From Monocercomonoides exilis PA203 (taxonomy: Eukaryota > Protista > Preaxostyla): a stretch of DNA of 64,000 nucleotides. The notes under the pieces were generated by a model. The model ran no database searches and had not been told where the DNA came from. It was given only the letters and a program-made list of their open reading frames with translations. This document shows positions 1,491-48,922 of this stretch, in pieces. The translations under genes and the position numbers were made by a program. Location: positions 349,565 to 413,564 of the forward strand of contig LSRY02000065.1 in NCBI GenBank assembly GCA_001643675.2, given 5' to 3'. Numbering within the stretch: the stretch's first letter is position 1; each line of letters opens with the position of its first letter.

Positions 1491-4360
1491 AGAAGAAGTA
1501 GAAGAAAAGAGATAAAAGAAAGAAATGCAAATATTCTGATGGAAGAAGAAGAAAAGAAGAATTAATAAGAAGTATTCGAAATGAGTTGATGGAAGATGAA
1601 TAATTGAATCAAGTAATATCGATACGAGGAGAAGGAGAAGAAGGAGAAGAAGAGAAAGAAAAAACAGAAAAAGATAAAGATAAAGATAAATCAAAATAAA
1701 AAAGTCAATGCGAATCGCTGTAATGATCACTAACTTTTCATTTGAACAAAGCTAAAACTATCACAAAAAATCAGAGCAACAATTAAATGAAAAAAACAAA
1801 TAAAAATTATAAGAGACTTAAATAAAAATGAACTTTTAATTCAAATCAGATTGTTTTTAAACATTTTCATAACAAATAAAATTTATTCATATTCATGGAA
1901 ATTGATTCTCTCAAGTCAATTTATTTCTGAACAACATATCAAACAAATATTTTTTGAAAAAATAAACAATTGTTAAATAAAAAGGAATGAATTTTCTTTA
2001 ACGAATTGCAAAAAAATGCAAAATAAAAATTTCGATAATTATGACACTCAGAAAAAACTTGTTAAACATGAAAAATCACTACGGTTTTAAGCCTTTGAAA
2101 AATGATAAATAATAAAAATGAGATACTGAAAATAATGCTTCAAAAACATTGAAAAATGAATTGGAAAATCTTTATGTGAATTTGCATAGAATGATAAGAC
2201 GTCTGTCAAAGCGAAAATAGTATTTTAATAAATGAAAATTTTGGTAAGGTTTATTGATAGTGAATTGTGAGTAAATTTTTGTTTTGAAAATTTTGAATTA
2301 TTGGAAAGTGTTTTATTTTTTTCAAAGCATAATTAAAAAAAATTGTTTGCTTTTATCTTTTAAAAAAAAACAGTGCCGGGCACTGACTGACGAGAGATCC
2401 ACATTTTTCAAGGTGACGCAGATGTTTACACAATCTAATCATGATAAGTCTTTCATTCTCATTTCAAAAAAAGCATGTGAAATTTTTCAAAATTGAAAAA
2501 TTTATTAAACGCGCAGAATGGAACAAAATTCATTGGGCAAAAATTTTTATCCCAGACAGGTGATTTATTTTTTTGAAATCATAAATTTATTGTCAAAATA
2601 TTATGTTTGAAAATTTGTTTTTCATTTTCGTGAAAGAACATTGAATAGTGATAACAATGTCTTCAAAAAAGAATTTTCATGAACGAATCTCGAATGAATG
2701 CTTTCGTGACAAAGGAAATTCAAAAATATATGGAAATGATGATTTCCAAGCCATTCACAAAAGATAACTATTAATTCATCTCCCCGAAAAAAGTTATGAT
2801 TGTTATTATTATTTCCAAAATTTAATTGAAATAATGCATGACAAAATTTTTGAATTAATTTGAAATACAACGAATTGTTCCAAACTTTTTCTCCATCGCA
2901 TCATTTTTTATCTATCATTCCCATGCATAATAATGAAAAAAAATACAATTAATTTGTCCAAATTTTTTGAAAAGTTCATTTTATTTAATTTTCAAATAAG
3001 ACAAAAATATCATATTTCGATCGAATTTCTGTTCCCACTGACAATACTTCACAAAAATGGAAACATAAGCATTGTCAAGATTTTGTTTTCATGGCAGCGA
3101 AATTTGGTGAGAGGGAACAGAAATTTGATCGAAATATGAAATTTTTATTTAATTTGAAATTTAAACAAAAGGAACTTTTCAAAAAAATTTAGCCATATAA
3201 ATGATAAATTTCATCTAAACCATTTCAAATACTAATGTTTAAGATGAAATAAAGAAAAACATTTGTTGGATAAGAATGTTCACTTTTCAGTGATCATTTA
3301 CAAATATTCAGATAAAAAATTTTTTTCAGTATTTTTTGATAGAAAAAATTGATTTCAAAAATAATCGCCCATATGAACACTAAAATAAATTATGCGCTTT
3401 TATTTGTCAGAGAACAAATAACAAAATAGGGCATGAAAGTGACAAAATCCAATTAAAAAGTGAAATCAATTAAAGCTTGACATTCTATTTGCAAATTTCA
3501 GATCGAAAGAAAGATGTTGATGAAATTAAGGACAAGGAAAGAAAGGTTGCATAATGATGTTATTATAGACGAAAGAAATGGAATTGAAAGACTTTTGAAT
3601 AAGTTTTCAAAAAGTTTTTTTAATTTTGAATTTTTTGATGATTCTATTCTTTAAATTTCCTCAGGTTATTAATAAAGAATTATTATTTTTTAAATGGGAC
3701 AAAACATTTGTCTTCAGGCATTTTAAATGGAAAATTTTTCATCTTTGATGAACTTTTTGTGATCAAAAATTTTGAAATAAACGGGTTTGTTTTTTGAAAT
3801 ACGTTTGATGTCACAAAACATAATGTTGTCATATCAATGATGTTTGTGTTCATATTTGAAAATCAAATTTATTTTGAAATCTGAAAGTTATTGAAAAAGT
3901 TATTTGTTAATCAATTTTTTCATGCATTGTACAAAAAAAGCTTGAAAGTCTATATTTTCCCTCATATTTTTTCTTCTTTTCATAAACTCTTATCTTTTAT
4001 AGTATTATCACTCCTTGACGCATATATGCGGTCCACAAATAATTATAAAAATTGTTTGTTGTTTTATTTTATTTTATGATACTGTTTATTTTCGAAAATG
4101 TCCAATATATATTAAAAATATTATCATAGAATTTCATCTTCGAACATTATTGAAATGTCTTTCATGTGAATTCTTATCCTGAAAAGGTGAAAAACAATAT
4201 TTTCTCTATGCATCATCTTAATTAATGGATTTTTTTATCACTTATAATTTGTTAACAGTATTCACATTCTTATTTTTGTATTTTTTTCGTTTTCCTTATT
4301 TTTGTTTAATTTTTCAATTTCATTTATTCAAACATGAACACTCACATACACAAACACATA

Positions 4361-29149: not shown

Positions 29150-30529
29150 CAATATAACCTCATCACTCATTCAATGAAAAATATTTTTTTTGTTCTGAGC
29201 GAGTTTTGATGTCAGTTTTGGTTTGAAAATACCAAAATTGGAAGAAAACAACAGTACAAACATTTTGAAAAGTGACAAAGAAAAATATATAAATAATTTT
29301 TTTATCTTGAAAAAAAATTTTTTTTTAAAGTTCATTATGTTTTTTTTAGGTGAAAACGAAAAAGGAATATTATTGTCATATTTTCATACAAACTCACCAA
29401 ATTTCACTTGCATGATAGTGAAATCATTGAAAAGTGATTGCTTTTATTCAGATGTATTTTTGTCAGTTTTAATGAATAATTGATGAAAGCATTCGATTTT
29501 TATTTTCACCAGAAAATAAAACAAAAGAAACTTTTCAAAAAAAAATTAGACACACATATTCACTTTTTGATACATTTGTTTTTTTCATTAAAAAAACATT
29601 ATCGATTTTGATTGATTGTATTTCGATTTTTTAAATTGTTTGGTGAGAAAAACAAAAAAAAGAATAATATAAAAAACAAAAATGATTAAAATTGATATCA
29701 AACTTTTGCACTTCAAAAATACGGTAATAAAAATATGTTATTAAAAAAGAATATAATCATCCAAGAAAAGGAAAACTTAATTAAACAGTTTCGAATTTTT
29801 TTTCACTCTTTCTTAAAGATTTGATGACAAAACAAAGCAAAGAGCATCTGATCAAAAATTTTCAAAATTGAAGATAAAAGCAATTCAATCATCCACACCA
29901 AAAAAGTGAATTTTATAAAATAAAAACACAAATAATAACATTTTTTAACAAAAATTATTTTTTTATAATTATTTTTTTTTCTATCTCAAATTTTCGACAT
30001 TTGTTTTAAAAAACTTTATATTGAAATAAGAATTTTTGAGTTTTCATGATTCAATAATATTTTTATCTAAGAGTTATGTTCGAAGAGTTATGAAAAATGA
30101 AAAACAACAGTTTTGAAATATAAAACATTTATCAATCAAATGATTCGAACATACTTCAATGTTACAGTTTCTGTGAAATTTCAATTTTTGTGGGGAAAAC
30201 AATTATTATGCAGATTTTTTTTTAATAAGAAAAAATGAGACACAAACTTGTTCATTGATGGAAAAAATAATGACTTGTATTTTCGAATTCAAAAATTAAA
30301 AATCAAAAATGTTATTTTTCTTTTCTTTTCTTATCTTTTTTTTTTTTTTTGATGAGCTGATTATTTTTTTATTATCATTATGAAAATTCACCAAATCAAC
30401 ATGCTTTTAATTAATTTTTGATTTAATTTTTATTTTGTGAATTAAATTCGAAAAAATTTTGGATAAATTGCAAATGGAACTTTTATTTGTTATCTTATTT
30501 TTTTCCAAATATTTCATTTTTCAAATAAG

Positions 30530-40552: not shown

Positions 40553-40684
40553 AGAATTATTCCTCTTGCAGTTATTGTGAAATCGATATTGTCCGGTATT
40601 ATGTGCGATGTCTAGTATTTTATACGATATCTAGATATTTAGTACCCATTTTTTTCGAAATGAAAAATTCAAAAAATAAAAAAA

Positions 40685-42295
40685 TCAATATATATATATA
40701 AATATATATATAAATTCAAAACTCGAATCAAATTTGCTAACGACTTTTTTTTTCCCCTTTCCTCTCTCAGTTTCATCAGACGATTCTTTCTCTATATCGT
40801 TCTTATCTTGAAGTATTCTGAAATTTCTTTTCAGCTTTTTTGAGAAATTCATTGTTTCATCATTTTCTTCATCAGAAATATTTTCAGTTTCATTTTCCAT
40901 TTCACTTTTCTTTTTCAAATATTCATCCCACTCGCTAAGCACCTTTTCTTCTTTATTTCTTTGATGTCGAAGTCAAATCGATTTTTATGTGAAGGAAGGG
41001 GATAAGTCGATGATAGAGGAAGCTTCATCAGAACTGTCTCCAACGAGTCTTTCCACTCTCAGTTGCATTTGAATGCTCTTTTGATAACCGAAGGTGATTG
41101 CACCGACTTAATTGATTTTTGAAGAGCCTCCACAAGAGCAGTTCTCTTCGCAGCTGAAGACAACGATGAAGGTGCTTCGTATTGGAAACTCATTTCTGAC
41201 TTCAGAACTGCAAAAGCTCCTCGGTTCAGTGGCTGGCAGATGTGTGTGCTGCGAGGGATGAACGTCACAACATCCACATTTTCTTTTTTGAACACTCACC
41301 AGATTGTTGTGCATGCACGAGAAATGATGGAGTCAGTTCAAGACAAGTAATGAAATTCGTCGAGAAACATGAGTTATCTTCTTTCTTTGATAGAAGGGAA
41401 AAGAATTGCGAGGGAAAATTCTCTGAACATAGAAGATACCATCCATCCGCGTTTGTTCGGCCAAATCTCAAGATCTGAAAACTGAAGAGTCTACAAGTCA
41501 TCAGGTATTTTGAGACTTGACCACAGAATCACTGAAGGAAGTGATTGACCATCAGCTGCAACCGCCGCAATCAGTGTAGAATTCGCTATTTGGACATCAG
41601 ATTTAGCGAAACCTGGTTTTGCATTTGCCGGATGAACAACATTCAAATTTGAGCTGTTGGGAACCCTGAGTGAAGACTCATCCACGTTAAATATCAGTGC
41701 ATTGTTGTTATTATTGTTCTGAAATAATCCATTGAGCATATTATCCCAGGGCTTCAGAACTTGTGGGCATGACACCGCAAGCATGTTTGTTTCACCAATT
41801 TACGGATTTGATGTCTTCAGCTTTGGATGTCTTTTGAAGAAATCCTATTCAACCAACGCAGAATCTTAAGCATCTGGAGTGTCTTCTGGTTTTTAATTAT
41901 TAACAACATTTTTAATCTTATTAATTTTAATTAAAACATTTCAAAAAACATCAATACAATCCAGTTCACTCATTTTCTTGATGGTTAGCTAGCTCCAGAT
42001 AATGATTCAATCATAATTTCGTCCGGCACTGTTTGCTCTTTTTCGCCAATGACAATAGCCGGTGTTCCCATTTTTAAACCAATCGGCCTTGCTGAACAGC
42101 CTTCACCGAACGCTTGATTCGAATTTTGCTAAATTTTTTGCTGTTGAATGCATCCGCCATTCGTGCAACTCCATCGTTAACTATATGCGCCATTCGCTCC
42201 AGCGGATTCATCAATTATCTCCATCCGAACGATAACATTTCCTCCCACAGCTTCAGCTGACCCGCAGTAGATTTCCTTGCAACTTCCTTTTTCAT
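40685..42295 (-). mobile_element. Decayed pogo/Fot1-type (Tc1/mariner, DDE_1/CENP-B-like) transposase pseudogene
   Basis: One frame from 41784 to 41059 reads IFNVDES...TLIAAVAADGQSLP...NKRGWM...DS..SR...FIPRSTHICQPLNRGAFAVLK through in-frame stops at 41493, 41376, 41340 and 41298. Upstream HTH-like remnants (GTPAIVIGEKEQ) and an ATG at 42295 are present. No TIRs were found. Confidence 0.78.
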
Positions 42296-42464
42296 TTTTT
42301 ATTTTTGGGTTATGATCATAAAGCCAATGTATTCATTTTATTGTGAAAAATTTCAATTCACGTTGATATTATATTTTTTGTCCATTGAAATGCATTTTTT
42401 TTTGTATTTTATTCCTTTGAACTAACCTATGACTGAATGAATTTCAACGGGAGCCTTTTATCCT

Positions 42465-42465
<1 letters not shown>

Positions 42466-42514
<49 letters not shown>

Positions 42515-42553
42515 AAAAACAAAACAAAACAAAACATAAAAAAAAACAAAAAA

Positions 42554-42584
<31 letters not shown>

Positions 42585-42630
42585 CATAAAAAAAAACAAA
42601 AAAAAAAAAAAACAAAACAAAACAAAACTA
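42466..42630 (+). repeat. poly(A) plus (AAAAC)n microsatellite
   Basis: Directly visible. Confidence 0.9.
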
Positions 42631-42830
42631 AATAATAATAGAATTAGTCATAATAATAATAATTATTATTGAAAATATTATGATAATAATATGTTAATTA
42701 TACTGAAAAGCTTACTGTTTGATTTTTTTCAAATTTTATAATAAAATTGTTTTTCTACTCACGATTGAAATGATTACACTAGATTAAAAGTGAAATTTTG
42801 ACAAGTGCCTTGAATGAGGACCACCATGCT

Positions 42831-42979
42831 TTTCCACCTCCCCTGCTTTTTGATTTCCACGTATCAGGTGGAAAGGATAAATGTGGTTGTCGTTGGACAA
42901 CCACTTGCACCCTCCCAGGGGTTGTAGACAAAGTTCCGCAGACAGAACACTCACTCTGACAAAAAAAAAAATTTTGTCA
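42831..42979. other. Cluster of consecutive hairpins (candidate structured RNA or element end)
   Basis: Stems: TTTCCAC/GTGGAAA (42854-42874), GTGGTTGTC/GACAACCAC (42883-42904), CCCT/AGGG (42910-42920), TGACAAAA/TTTTGTCA (42957-42979). Confidence 0.45.
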
Positions 42980-43067
42980 TCGACAAACATTTCTGACTTT
43001 GTGTTTTTTTCCAACTTCAATTTATGTTCTGTCTATTACAACACTTCATCCACATTCACTAAGTCTG

Positions 43068-43397
43068 ATAGTTAGTCATTCCTAGTGAATGCTATATGCG
43101 CCTCAATAATATAACCAAAAGTTAGTCTACGACTATCATTTCTAACTTAATCATTTTTCAATGACAAGTCGAAAAGTTAGTCAACGCCTAACTTTGATTC
43201 TCAAACAGACTTTTTGGTACCTCATATTAACAAAATAATTTTATCAATAAAAATACCAAAGTTAGTCATTCTATCACCAACCAACTTGATAGATTTATTC
43301 ATTTGATCCAAAAGTTAGGCAAAACCTATCTTTTATATACTTAGCATTTTCACCCTCTTTTCCCCAAAGTTAGGCATCACCTAACTTCTTCTAACTT
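43068..43397. repeat. Array of six interspaced short palindromic repeats, consensus about CCAAAAGTTAG(T/G)C-n-CCTAACTT
   Basis: GTTAG cores at 43071, 43121, 43176, 43261, 43314 and 43369 (spacing 50, 55, 85, 53, 55). Most are followed by a reverse-complement-like half-site CTA(A/T)CTT. The intervening sequences are unrelated to each other. Confidence 0.75.
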
Positions 43398-43868
43398 AGT
43401 TATTTTTAAAATAACTTTAAAAAATTCACCAAATAAGTCCAACGTAAAAAGGGGAGAAGCCATCATATTTCTATAATGACTTCTCCCCTGTTTATCGTTT
43501 AGCCTCATTTCCTTTTATTAATATCCTTTTATTTATATCCAATTATAATTAATTATTATTTGTTTTTTTTTAAACCTTTTTTATTTGTTTTTAATAACCT
43601 TTTTTCTTATTTTTTATACCTTAGAAAGAATCCATATTTCAAACACAATTTCGATTCTTGGGGCATTCGAATTGATAAAAGACGATAACAACTAAGTTAA
43701 AAAGTTTAAAAATTTAAAATTAAAAAAACAAAAAATAATAAATAAATTAAATTAAATAAAAGTAAATAAAAATAAATATAAGTAAAATAACTTTAAATAA
43801 TTCAAAAATAAAAATGTAATTATATTGGGGACTAAATACACACACTGCTCCCTGTTCATCGCTTCCTT

Positions 43869-45817
43869 TCATTGCATTGACTTCTTGTCCACTATTTCCT
43901 CCAGGTCATCTTCATCGTAATCATTATCATTATCATTACAATTATCATCATCATCTTTTTTATCTTCTTCATCTTTTTCGATCAAATATTTCTTCATATT
44001 CCATTTCTTCTTTTCTTTCTTTGCCTTCTTTTCCTTCTTTATCTTCTCAATCTTTCTTTCCTGTTCTCTTTCATCTTCCTTCTTCTCTCCAGCATGTGGG
44101 TCAAAACTGCATGGGGAATCAAAATGGTCGCAAATAAAGATATTGTTAGTTGATCCATAAATCTTATTCCTTTCCTGGCATCTTCTTCTGGAGAGGTTCA
44201 CTTTGTGATTCTCCACTGTGAGGTTCAACACATTCGGATCTGTATCTCTGTGGCTAACCTCACAACCGGATGGAATCTTAGCTCCAAGATTCATCCAGCG
44301 CCATGCTATGGCATGGACAACCACTTTCTTTAAGGATCTTTTGAGGAGAAGTTCCTTTTCTTCCTTTGTCGGTTCGCTCAAAAGATCCGGCTTCTTCAAA
44401 ACGAGCTTTCTAGTTTTCTTTTCCCCCTTTTTCCTTTCGTCCTTTTCAGCGATTCTTCTTTGTTCCCTTTCGCACTTTATTTCTCTCATCTGAATTACTA
44501 GCTCATTAATATCTTCATCATTCAATTTAGGGAACTATTTGTGCACCGTCAATTGGGGATACAATCCAGTCTTCGAATCACCTTTTCTGGTACCAGTTAG
44601 TTTTGTTTTGAAGAAGAACTCTTCACCTCTTCTGACCCATTCACCGTATTTCCTTGGGCCATTTATGTGGGAGCACATGAGACAGTGGAGCTCGACAAAG
44701 TTGAAAACATTCACCAGAGCATGTGGGAATGACGGATCATACTCAAAAAGGTACAGCTCTTTCCTTTTGTTGACTGGTTCAAAAGTTTTCCGATCAAATT
44801 TCTTATCACATGCCTTTTCGGCACTTTTAAGAAATTTAACCCACCAGTCAATATCCCGCACAGGCTCCTTCCTTGGAGCAAGAGCTGTCACATGCTCAGC
44901 TGGATCCAGCTTCACAATCTTCATCACCGTCTCAGCTAAGAATCGAGCCCATTTCTCGCACTTGGTATCATCCCAATATGTTAAGCCATGAACTTTCTTC
45001 TGAGCGGCATCCACAAGCTCTCTAGCCTCATCCATCACTTCGTCTGCATCGAAGCATGGAGGATCTGCATCCTTGAACCACCCAGGAAGAATTATTACAC
45101 TAGGTAACATCAAATCCTCGAGGTCTGCATCATAGAGTCCATGTACTTGGACAAGGGGATGTTTGTTCTTTTCTTCTTTTTTCTTCTTTTTCCTTCGACC
45201 CTCGTTTTTGTCACCATCTTCATCCCTTTCATTTTTATCATCAAACTGTCCAGGATATTTTTCCTCGTCGAAAAGAACAATCACATCATCCTTGTCTTCA
45301 TACGGAACACCCTCGATGATAAACAGAGGTTCAGGATCGATCTGTGTCTGTGCTGCAAAAGACACATTGAGGCTAGCCCTGTTTATCGATGGCAGATCAT
45401 CAAGCAAAGGGACCTGCGATGCTTGATGATTGTCTGCCTCTGTGTCATCCAAGCAATATAAAAATCAGCAGTTAAATAATTATTCAATCAGAAAAGCAAA
45501 CTGAAAGCACACACAGCTTCAGCTTCCACTTCAGCTGCTGCGCTACCAATCCGGCTGCCCTCGAGATCGGAAGAGCGAGCTTCCTTGTCCATCAGGACAA
45601 CAGGAGTCATCGGTTGAGCGAAGGGAGGCAATCCTTCGGACTGCTTCTCTTTCTCTTCCTCTTTCTCCTGGGTGAGATCTATGATCCCACCGAGAAACGA
45701 CATCTTCTTCTTCTCGAAGGGCAGATGTTCGTCTTTTGGACTGTCTATGTCAGTCCCGCTGCATTCAGTCTCAGCCTTTTCCTCTTCTGACTTATCTGAC
45801 TCAGCAGACACAGTCAT
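43869..45817 (-). pseudogene. Protein with a C-terminal His-Me finger (His-Cys-box/I-PpoI-like zinc-binding loop) endonuclease domain; one in-frame TAG
   Basis: ORFs 45452-44535 and 44525-43869 are the same frame, separated by one TAG (HK*FPKLN). The motif VVVHAIAW...CEVSHRD..P..LNLTVENHKVNLSRRRC...CDHFDSPC lies at about 44324-44108. The upstream ORF 45817-45515 is a probable first exon, but its acceptor is ambiguous. Confidence 0.65.
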
Positions 45818-47504
45818 TGGTGCAGGTCTTTTTTAATATCCATATATATAAATCCAATAACAGAATATGCCCATCACACACCACCCATACCCTCAATAAG
45901 AAAGAAAGAAAAATGACACACCAGGTGTAATTAATTTTCTTCGAAGTCCCATCCGGAACCGTCTAATTGGTGTATTTATAATATTCGTATTCATATCTAT
46001 TGATATAGAAATATAGACATATAAAGTGAGAGAGGGAAAGGAGATAATTAATTATGCCAACAAATCAAAAATTCAAAAAGAATCCAGATAGGCACAAGAA
46101 CAACAGATACTGGAGCAGATGGAAAGAGAGCGTGAGCATGGAGGATGGAGTTTGTTGCCACCGCCCTGAGCAGGCCCAATCCCACTCAGGTGAAGTGAGC
46201 GCAGTTTGTCTAAATCATATTCGACAAGAGGAATAAAAGGACCCTCTGCCTCATACGATAAACAGGGACTGCCAATGATCCATCACTCTTCCCAGATGTG
46301 CACAGTCACATTAATTGAAAAAAGAGATATGGGATTAGTAATATTCCAGTCGTTATTAATTTTCAATATTCAGATGACTTCGCTTAGCATTATGCTAACT
46401 ACACATCATCTTTCCTCCTGATACGGAGTCACAGCTGGCCCCCAACCCAATAGAAGTCCTGATCAAAGGAACTTCCACACACTGTGTTTCCACAGTGATC
46501 CCCCTTTTCTTCAATGTACAATGCACATGGTGTTCCCCCTCTCAATTCTACCTATTTCACCAATTTCCCCCCATATTTTTAAATATCAGAACATAATTAT
46601 TAAAAAAATAATTATATTAAAAAAAATAAATATTTTTGTTATTATTATTTGCTATTTCATTAATAAACCGCAATAATCTTTAATATCTTATTTATCGGAA
46701 AAAATATGCAAATTTGATAACATGGGCGAAAATATGGACTTTCAAGCTTTTTTCGCACTTGGCATAGAAAAATTACTTCTCTCATGACTTTATTTTGATT
46801 TCTCAGAATTCAAAATAAAATTGATGTTCATATTCGTAAACAGGCATCGTTGAAATTAAAACAAAAAGATTTCCAACATTACACGAATGTCAAAAAATGG
46901 ACCCAATATTATTGTGTTTTTTGTACTCAGAAAATCAACGAAATGTGCACAATTTTTCAATGAAAATGCTAAAAGTTAAATATTTTTCCACACATGAATT
47001 TTTCTTTGGAATAATATTTAATACTCATTGGAATAAGAATTCGTGCTTTTCATCAACATAAATAAAGTGTTGAAAATACTTTTTTTATTAACATTTTTTT
47101 AATTTAAAAAAGTTATTGTTTTCATCCTAAATGAATTTGTTTTCTCTTAAAAAATATTATCTTATCTTGAAATTCAACATTATTCATGAATTCTATGGAA
47201 AAATTTAAATGCAAAAAAAATAATACCCATAAGTATTTTCCAAATTTAATATTACTTATGGGGCGATGTGAGATCAAATGATCTGATAATCTAATAATTC
47301 AAAATTTTGAATCACAAAAAGTTTATTATTATTTTTATTTTCCCACAATTTTGTGATTTCTTAGGAAAAGCATCCACATTTGTTTTGACAATAAAATAGA
47401 TTTCTTCATCGTTCAGCCAAACAAATTTTCTGCTGAGAGCAGAATAAAGTGGAAATACAAAAAGTGAAATGATAAAAAAAAAAAAAAAAAAAAAAACATT
47501 TGTG

Positions 47505-48922
47505 TTACAGATTAAAAAAATAATCTTCAACATTAAGAACGAAAGAATATGAAAAATACTTATCTTTAATCCAGCAATGGAGGTACCCGTAGACGCAATC
47601 TTCAAATCCCTCTTCTTCCATCTTTTCGCGCACCACCCTTTTCTTCTCTTTTCGTTTTACCTCATCATTTTCTTTTTCCATTTCACTCTTCAATCCGAAT
47701 AAAAGTATCTTTAACATTCTCAATGAATTATCAACAATCCGAAGCTTAGCATTTAATTGGACAACTTTCTCCAAAACAGCTTCAATTGCCCCATTTTTCA
47801 AAAATGCATCAATTGCCTTGTCTCTTCTTCTTACTGCTTGTATAAAAAAATACATATTCACATTGTTTATTTCCCCATAATTATCATTTGCTTCTCTGAA
47901 TCGACTGACAAGGCAATGAATCAGTTCATCGCATTCATCATCCCACGATTTACACAAATCCAAGAATTTCCCCAACGTTTTCAGCCATCTCGAGATCACT
48001 ATTCCTTCTTTTCCCATCTTCATTTTCCCCTTTCTCTTCCAATTCGCACATTTTGCCAACTCTTCCACTTCTTTTGTTGCTTCTCTTGCAAAATGCAGTT
48101 CGTTCACAATCACTTCTTCCAAACTGTCTTCATTTCTTCTTCTTTTGATCAAAAACTCCCAAGCAGATTGATAGGCAATCTGTGTAAGATTGTGGAACTT
48201 TTGATGATACTCAATAATCTCTTTGATATCAGGAAAATATAATCTTTTCTCAATATTCTAATCAAAAACAAGGAGAAAAAAATGCAAAAATATCGTTAAT
48301 AATGAAACAGAAATTATCAAACAAAATCCTCGATAATGCAGCTCAAAGTCAGCAAAGCCATTTCCACTTTTTTCTGGACTTCCTCGGTTTCCTCTTTGTT
48401 TAATGCAATAATCAAAAGGCAAGACACACAGGTCGAAAGTAATTGATGAGGAACTTCGTTATAAAACAAAAGATAGCATTCGCAAATGTTAACAAAAACC
48501 ATTTTGTTCTTTTCTTCAATCTTCTTATATTCTTCAAAAATCAGCTCCTCAAATCTTTCGAGCAAAGAAGAATGTAAAAATTCAAAATCGTAACAATTGT
48601 TCAGTAAAGAACAATTCCCGATGCACTTCAGCAGCAAAAATGCATTATTCCAATTTAACTTCTTTTCTTCAATCATTCGGCTAATTTCGTTGAACAGATC
48701 TGTTGTGAAAACAGAATCCAAAGTTTCTGAGTTCATTTCTTCTATTAGTCTATTCATTTCTTTGATTTTCTGAATTTGTTTTGCTTTCTTGCAATATTCC
48801 AGTTCAGAAAACAATTCTATAAAAAATAACAAGTATTCACTTTTATCAAGAATTCAAATACAACAATTTCACAAACTATTAAATTTTTCACTAACAGTCA
48901 ACTCCCACATTTTCACAGACAT
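47505..48922 (-). CDS. Lineage-specific multicopy helical protein (KVEMALLTLS / HNLTQIAYQSAW family), copy 2
   Basis: Exons 48922-48877, 48816-48323, 48257-47505. Motifs and intron phases match 32914-34336. Confidence 0.78.

Follow-up and report, generated by a model that had tools for sequence, protein, structure and literature searches.

A probable relic of an escaped homing endonuclease in Monocercomonoides exilis, beside a locus-specific palindromic repeat array

The window analyzed here is the terminal 64 kb of contig C64 in the nuclear genome assembly of the oxymonad Monocercomonoides exilis (82.3 Mb, 101 contigs), an AT-rich stretch with long open reading frames (ORFs), spliceosomal introns and many repeats. 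Its minus strand carries a gene, annotated in part as MONOS_11364, with a C-terminal endonuclease-like domain, and on the 3' side of this gene lie an array of palindromic repeats, a strong hairpin and a GC-richer segment. A sequence-only reading of the window had combined these features into one novel nuclease element. We find that the nuclease assignment is supported and that a system of nuclease plus array is not. We estimate at roughly two in three the probability that the gene is the relic of an escaped homing endonuclease and that the array and the hairpin are separate, locus-specific duplications, not parts of one system.

The gene is real. Its three consecutive minus-strand ORFs (45817–45488, 45452–44535 and 44525–43869) belong to a single reading frame that is split by an in-frame TAG codon inside the C-terminal domain. 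The parts of the gene, all on the minus strand, are listed below in the direction of reading.

45502–45817, minus strand: exon 1 of MONOS_11364, an acidic N-terminal region beginning MTVSAES, defined by its ORF and by a boundary that matches the annotated 406-residue protein P0002
45440–45501, minus strand: spliceosomal GT–AG intron of 62 nt, whose removal is demanded by P0002, which reads ...AVCAF-K-ADNHQ...
44538–45439, minus strand: exon 2 of MONOS_11364, an ORF whose sequence is conserved with the C40 and C28 paralogues
44535–44537, minus strand: in-frame TAG, the annotated end of MONOS_11364, beyond which the frame runs on
43869–44534, minus strand: continuation of the frame, with a Lys/Glu-rich linker of ~66 residues, the His-Me finger core, an acidic tail and a stop codon
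44109–44330, minus strand: His-Me finger (beta-beta-alpha-metal) core of the I-PpoI type, identified from a sub-threshold match to Pfam HNH_3, the family alignment and the fold of a paralogue

The two exons (316 and 902 nt) add up to 406 codons, in agreement with the length of P0002. No known domain was found in the N-terminal region of exon 2, whereas its final ~140 residues (NFVELHC...YPQLTV) are the N-terminal β-strand part of the endonuclease-like domain. A search of the ESM Atlas with the N-terminal region returned the fungal DUF6532 and DUF6698 with scores below 0.9, which we judged to be noise. In the reference annotation, the second half of the frame is a separate, unnamed protein of 206 residues (P0003, 43872–44489) that starts from an internal Met. 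We consider instead that the window holds one broken gene, because the TAG is in frame, because this codon is ATG (Met) in the paralogue on contig C54, whose frame is uninterrupted there, and because in the C40 and C28 paralogues the sequences on either side of the TAG position form one contiguous domain. The alternative that the linker, which holds the TAG, is a spliceosomal intron was rejected: its conservation between the window and C54 copies is that of coding sequence (94% amino-acid identity; ratio of nonsynonymous to synonymous substitution rates, dN/dS, 0.17, compared with 0.32 for exon 2), and its removal would reduce the length of a loop that every relative has in a longer form.

The sequence-only reading had recognized a His-Cys-box-like nuclease motif in this gene, and our analysis confirms it. 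The SH...E...N...C...C-x-H...C pattern is present at 44109–44330, where the Ser-His pair, the Glu, the Asn and the second zinc site (C...C-x-H...C) are kept and the first zinc site is gone. Matches to curated models were weak. In Pfam scans, HNH_3 was reached with E values of 0.004–0.016, below the cut-off; the piece from the window, which matches HNH_3 only, scored E 0.004 and 17 bits with 24.8 bits required, and the C40 paralogue matched zf-His_Me_endon (PF05551) with E 0.029 and 15 bits, short of the curated cut-off of 27. Word-based protein searches with the C40 core and with full MONOS_11364 returned the M. exilis paralogues only (MONOS_5383, MONOS_11364 and MONOS_16664) and no outside relatives.

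An exhaustive profile search seeded with an alignment of the M. exilis paralogues gave 46 matches, namely three M. exilis proteins and 43 from outside this genome, with E values from 1.8e-13 to 3.6e-4. The outside matches are small proteins of 64–330 residues except for one repetitive ORF of 1106 residues. The latter (P0013, metagenomic) consists of ~15–20 tandem copies of a ~57-residue unit and was matched by a short stretch of the profile; it looks more like a translated DNA tandem repeat than a family member. Half of the remote relatives scanned reach PF05551 just under the cut-off (18–24 bits). The alignment of the 46 sequences displays the conserved pattern VH..WR...SH...E....NESRK.C...CPH....C with 13 near-invariant positions, all of which are kept in C40 and 11 of which are kept in the window copy, where NLSRR in place of NESRK accounts for the two changes. 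In C40-core numbering, C102, C118, H120, C125, H78 and N96 are each conserved in all or at least 90% of the 46 sequences, and the window copy has all six. Sequence searches of the PDB, with a single paralogue and with the 46-sequence profile, gave no match.

The fold was modeled with AlphaFold2 for the core of the C40 paralogue. On the 46-sequence alignment the model reached a predicted local distance difference test score (pLDDT) of 87.8; an earlier model built from seven sequences was unusable (pLDDT 39.6). The model contains a β-hairpin (strands 74–78 and 88–92) followed by a helix (93–111), where strand 1 ends in S77-H78 and the helix contains N96, the arrangement that defines the His-Me finger superfamily; the window copy itself retains the corresponding SH, E and N. 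In an exhaustive structural comparison, I-PpoI was the top match (Z 6.2 over 99 residues, root-mean-square deviation 3.9), followed by I-HmuI (Z 5.0), and all remaining matches were at Z ≤2.6. Profile homology, the fold match and the conserved catalytic residues thus support the assignment of the C-terminal domain to the His-Me fingers, as a relative of I-PpoI and other His-Cys-box enzymes.

The nearest relatives of the domain are genuine nuclear homing endonuclease genes of introns in ribosomal DNA (rDNA), since seven of the nine relatives whose genomic contexts were sampled lie in eukaryotic large-subunit (LSU) rDNA and/or beside group I introns detected by Rfam. Of the remaining two, one is on a contig too short to judge, and the other occupies an ordinary chromosomal locus in Streblomastix strix, likewise an oxymonad. 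The rDNA-resident genes on metagenome contigs L040, L042, L043, L045, L060, L062 and L064 have the motif NESRK.C...CPH...PC and are devoid of the first zinc site; L040 carries two such homing endonuclease genes, convergent, within a single LSU insertion. This rDNA-resident sub-lineage is probably missed by routine annotation, because it scores under the PF05551 cut-off.

The LSU rDNA of M. exilis has a homing endonuclease of its own. This canonical His-Cys-box ORF of 185 residues is antisense, contains both zinc sites and matches I-PpoI with E 5.7e-14; it is located at C96:6871–7428, with identical copies on C97 and C6 and a degenerate copy on C5, and Rfam at its gathering threshold called no group I intron around it. 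The rDNA endonuclease and the window family share a genome, a superfamily and motifs that align in register, but their kinship is only distant (hhalign E 0.0015) and the rDNA enzyme has both zinc sites. The register of this profile alignment places Asp at the position of C100 of I-PpoI and Val at that of C105, and a three-residue deletion spans H110. Because of these replacements and this deletion, the first zinc site (C41, C100, C105 and H110 of I-PpoI) is missing from the whole sub-lineage, its rDNA-resident members included. The second zinc site (C125, C132, H134 and C138) and the positions of catalytic H98 and N119 are kept.

Apart from KolobokP in animals (below), the literature assigns every nuclear homing endonuclease to the His-Cys proteins of rDNA introns (PMC9548176), and nuclear His-Cys-box enzymes are described as restricted to group I introns there. 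With these enzymes (I-PpoI, I-DirI, I-NjaI and I-DsqI; PF05551) the window family shares the beta-beta-alpha-metal core, in which a Ser-His pair ends strand 1 and the helix carries the Asn, as well as the second zinc site; I-PpoI is its best structural match, and LSU rDNA with group I introns is where its closest sequence relatives are located. Unlike them, the window family is found outside rDNA and introns, has replaced or deleted the first-zinc ligands C100, C105 and H110, carries an N-terminal extension of ~330 residues and a linker of ~66 residues inserted within the domain, is multi-copy and mostly damaged, and falls under the Pfam cut-off. The earlier remark that no rDNA or group I intron is visible at the locus was borne out, as neither was found across the window. 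The S. strix homologue (KAA6399083.1; SNRW01000824.1, L063 4001–4822) likewise stands outside rDNA, among ordinary genes, and its N-terminal extension, too, is acidic and rich in Lys and Glu. The three M. exilis sequences form one group (84/26) in a maximum-likelihood tree, where the S. strix protein is on a long branch in an unresolved polytomy with the M. exilis clade, near the rDNA-resident members.

Whole-genome DNA and protein searches located the family at five loci, together with a weak N-terminal fragment on contig C59.

Window copy (contig C64): reference copy, with the in-frame TAG and two near-invariant residues changed
C54 copy: 85% DNA identity over window positions 44323–46572; broken off in the Lys/Glu linker just before the His-Me core
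C16 copy: 76% identity over window positions 43815–44535; contains stops, has Gly-Arg in place of the catalytic Ser-His, and is interrupted upstream by repeats that resemble miniature inverted-repeat transposable elements (MITEs)
C40 copy: diverged, in a 5.7-kb block common with C28; core uninterrupted, with 13 of the 13 conserved residues
C28 copy: diverged, in the 5.7-kb block common with C40; a TAA is present and an Asn-His change (NH)
45818–46572 of the window, minus strand: upstream block co-duplicated on C54, with mosaic identity; the homology ends at 46572 in both copies

The values of dN/dS between copies range from 0.17 to 0.38, and on this basis the family appears to have evolved as coding sequence over most of its divergence. 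C40 is the best candidate for a copy that may still work. Given its premature TAG and the loss of two near-invariant residues, the window copy is most likely a young pseudogene or, at best, encodes a crippled protein. The C54 copy breaks off exactly at a short CCTAACCCTAACC repeat, an interstitial telomere repeat at ~4946–4962 of C54 (1–10000). The real telomere, a long CCCTAA array, is 5 kb away, as though the healing of a broken end had been followed by its burial under additional subtelomeric DNA.

Identity between the window and C54 copies is a mosaic, varying from 53 to 98% per 100 bp, which suggests patches of gene conversion. In the non-coding upstream block it is 65–69% in the 200 bp by the start codon and 92–94% at 46023–46322, while the coding region is mostly at 76–86%. 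The segment at 46023–46322 also contains a 60-codon ORF on the plus strand, with a stop in the C54 copy. The hairpins that the sequence-only reading had placed upstream of the gene were not recovered, as no notable local inverted repeats occur in 45800–46570. The 741-nt upstream stretch as a whole folds better than its shuffles (z −4.4, with only 20 shuffles). Conserved RNA structure in this stretch was considered and set aside: two homologous sequences only are available, with no informative compensatory changes.

The array on the 3' side of the gene had been described as six palindromic repeats with a period of 50–55 bp and unique spacers.

43060–43417, no strand assigned: array of six ~55-bp units, five with the core CAAAGTTAG[G/T]C...CTA[A/T]CTT and one weak

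The local cluster is real, although its sixth member is weak, only two of its palindromes are perfect and its spacers are not fully unique. The palindrome of the core, AAAGTTAGG-n-CCTAACTT, is 22–23 nt long. With at most one mismatch, CAAAGTTAGKC matches seven times in the 64 kb, where ~2 matches are expected, and six of the seven fall within 43117–43375; five of these are unit cores on the forward strand, and the remaining one comes from the unit at 43172, being the reverse arm of its palindrome. The starts of successive units are spaced by 55, 85, 53 and 55 bp, and the weak sixth unit (~43065) precedes the first by 55 bp. Perfect palindromes, with arms of 8–9 bp, exist in two units only (43173–43195 and 43367–43387), the other units being imperfect. 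The repeats are 65–76% identical. The units share a second motif, TAACTTAGT.ATTTT, and outside the core they resemble one another more than shuffled versions do (z 2.7, p ~0.01). Since similarity among the units thus extends beyond the core, the array looks like a decayed tandem duplication of a ~55-bp unit, the first 25 nt of which hold the inverted repeat, and it is specific to this locus.

Like minisatellite-type tandem repeats, the units are arranged head to tail with a spacing of 53–55 bp, occupy a single locus and have decayed relative to each other; unlike in a minisatellite, the core with the inverted repeat is better preserved than other parts of the unit, and one unit exceeds the others by 30 bp. 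The array is not reported by Tandem Repeats Finder, because its units are less than ~70% alike. Across the 82-Mb genome, the full palindrome pattern was found nowhere else except for one chance-like match, and the 12-nt half-site showed no enrichment (20 occurrences, against 20 in the reversed control). The whole 641-bp stretch at 42780–43420 is single-copy in the genome. Neither the motif nor a comparable palindrome array was found downstream of the C16, C40 and C28 genes or around the S. strix gene. As a candidate target site in rDNA, the array motif was discarded, with a chance-level match only in the rDNA unit. A CRISPR-like (clustered regularly interspaced short palindromic repeats) array of repeats and spacers was rejected as well: the repeats are only 65–76% identical, the spacers keep some similarity, and the array is confined to one locus and does not accompany other family members. 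Moreover, the host is a eukaryote, and bacterial readings (CRISPR, intrinsic terminators) are therefore not applicable.

Between the array and the gene is a hairpin, which had been reported at 43450–43489.

43783–43865, minus strand: immediate 3' flank of the gene, conserved in the C16 copy (homology to 43815), from a three-way alignment
43407–43500, minus strand: second, diverged copy of this 3' flank, 376 bp further downstream, holding the hairpin at 43445–43494, from direct repeats and alignment
42780–42960, no strand assigned: GC-richer segment, single-copy, with three short hairpins and not tied to the gene

The hairpin is strong, with an 18-bp stem and a minus-strand RNA fold of −35.1 kcal/mol (z −10.8), and extends over 43445–43494. 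It folds better on the strand of the gene through two G-U pairs; that both of the two pairs favor the minus strand is no evidence of RNA-level selection. By alignment, the hairpin lies in a duplicated copy (~90 bp) of the gene's own 3' flank, and the hairpin region is single-copy in the genome. With the 3' flank duplicated in addition to the array units, the hairpin and the array therefore stand in a stretch with several local duplications. Searches of the array, the hairpins and the GC-richer segment with Rfam gave nothing besides a sub-threshold match of the hairpin to mir-965, which we take as chance. In the GC-richer segment, previously described as carrying multiple hairpins, the three short stems are present at 42780–42960, but the folds are near those of shuffled sequence (z −2.3 and −1.9).

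These data bear directly on the proposal that the gene, the array and the hairpins jointly make up a selfish, self-contained element of ~3.8 kb whose array would serve as binding, cleavage or origin sites of the nuclease or be transcribed as a repeat-spacer RNA. The proposal retains its nuclease component, a His-Me finger relative of His-Cys-box homing endonucleases outside rDNA whose fold is backed by profile homology and by I-PpoI as the best structural match, and loses the unit. In favor of the unit, pseudo-palindromic sites are what I-PpoI-type enzymes cut as homodimers (PMC9587614, PMC9548176), the array core is a palindrome that is better conserved than the remainder of the unit, the array lies 3' of the gene, and the hairpin folds more strongly on the minus strand, that of the gene. 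However, the array, the hairpin and the GC-richer segment have no second instance in the 82 Mb, and the array is missing from all four members whose 3' flanks can be read (C16, C40, C28 and S. strix), as well as from the rDNA-resident relatives. With homologues that lack the array and nothing alike elsewhere in the genome, the claim of an element fails the test that had been set for it in advance. Nor were shared element ends found: the only long paralogous block (C54, 44323–46572) ends off the proposed boundary, and there are no significant terminal inverted repeats. A candidate pair at 42860–42888 and 46397–46425 (29 nt, 76% complementary) was not significant in strand-specific BLAST and is internal to the block shared with C54. 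Conserved repeats with varying spacers, or an RNA derived from them, also fit poorly with repeats that are 65–76% alike, with spacers that keep similarity and with the appearance of a decayed tandem duplication, and the nuclease frame is broken in the window copy. We therefore regard the self-contained element as very improbable. The narrower idea that the palindromes are recognition sites of the dimeric endonuclease-like protein, which might serve as decoys, for autoregulation or as a landing pad for self-targeting, is extremely unlikely; were it true, this would be the sole surviving eukaryotic nuclease paired with an array of its targets.

Two other explanations concern the gene itself. It may have been domesticated by the host, either as a pair of MONOS_11364 and the 206-residue His-Me protein or as a read-through product, with the array as a regulatory or terminator-region repeat. 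The low dN/dS among copies would be expected of such a gene, as would the S. strix homologue that lies among normal genes outside rDNA and adjoins the M. exilis clade in the tree, the retention of 11 of 13 near-invariant residues in the window copy and of all 13 in C40, and the two genes of the reference annotation. The TAG, however, separates the N-terminal β-strands from the catalytic core, so that neither product is the whole domain; C54 is truncated, C16 (SH changed to GR) has stops and C28 has NH and a TAA; and the tree position of S. strix is unresolved, on a long branch. Domestication is on balance unlikely. The gene could also be cargo of an unrecognized larger transposon, moved by a transposase encoded nearby. 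The precedent is KolobokP, transposons of animals that captured an I-PpoI-like endonuclease (Kojima and Bao 2022, PMC9587614) and that, like the window family, present an I-PpoI-type gene outside the rDNA intron niche in dispersed chromosomal copies. The 5.7-kb block common to C40 and C28 and the transposon-rich surroundings of the gene in the window (a pogo-like element at 40639–42463 and a 245-bp MITE-like repeat at 46722–46962) are in line with such an origin. Yet KolobokP has a DDD/E transposase and long terminal direct repeats, neither of which is seen at the window locus, its nucleases retain all eight His/Cys residues, and it was reported from animals, not protists. No transposase or integrase domain was found in the ORFs of the shared blocks. 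The family is carried by only five loci with no common ends, and the pogo-like element, the only transposase remnant in the vicinity, represents a separate family with at least 40 copies; it stops at 42463, short of the array, which it excludes, and does not travel with the gene. The neighbor gene common to the window and C40 comes from a family of more than 150 copies, so its adjacency can be chance. We consider transposon cargo improbable.

Several observations weigh against the relic that we favor. Sequence support from curated models is sub-threshold, Foldseek of the C40 model against the PDB gave no significant match (I-PpoI and I-HmuI at E ~1–2 only), the Z score of 6.2 is moderate, and the modeled structure is that of the C40 paralogue rather than of the window copy. 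A functional, domesticated gene would be compatible with dN/dS values below 1 and with the homologue in another oxymonad genus, and the TAG could be an assembly error or could delimit two real genes as in the reference annotation. On the side of the array, the core is better preserved than the rest of the unit, where pure neutral decay predicts otherwise, and a protein-binding role for the core is possible. As C54 is without the 3' part, co-occurrence of gene and array is tested by C16, C40, C28 and S. strix only, and C40 and C28 are too diverged for a base-by-base comparison of the flanks.

Under the escaped-relic reading, the C-terminal domain would descend from His-Cys-box (I-PpoI) homing endonucleases of nuclear rDNA introns, in a sub-lineage that has lost the first structural zinc site but has kept the second, along with the catalytic Ser-His and the metal-binding Asn. 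The domain may then, in oxymonads, have left rDNA for ordinary chromosomal loci and gained its N-terminal extension, and its copies may have spread by ordinary DNA-level duplication, one of them into a subtelomere. These copies would have evolved as coding sequence for most of their history and are now mostly damaged. The array would have arisen as a tandem duplication at this locus and then decayed, and the hairpin lies in the duplicated 3' flank, within the same duplication-prone intergenic stretch. A sub-lineage free of zinc site I is seen here outside rDNA in two oxymonad genera, with an added N-terminal region and visible past purifying selection. It would be a second, independent example of the escape of His-Cys-box proteins from rDNA introns, after the only one reported, KolobokP in animals, and its copies would form a natural set for studying the decay or domestication of a homing endonuclease gene.

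The surroundings of the gene contain further repeats. The pogo-like DNA transposon is a DDE_1 remnant with in-frame stops, its genomic copies are 73–84% identical, and its right end adjoins a 160-bp poly(A)/(CAAAA)n run at 42466–42627. The MITE-like dispersed repeat has other copies on C40, on C16 (several, in both orientations), on C59 and in the window at ~2950–3200 and 29314–29543. Upstream of the endonuclease-like gene, a further minus-strand gene (47505–48832) belongs to a very large M. exilis family devoid of Pfam domains. Its adjacency to the endonuclease-like gene recurs on C40, and a conserved two-gene unit was rejected in view of the size of this family, which gave 150 scored matches at E <1e-32 among 1713 candidates; three of its members are found together on C59.

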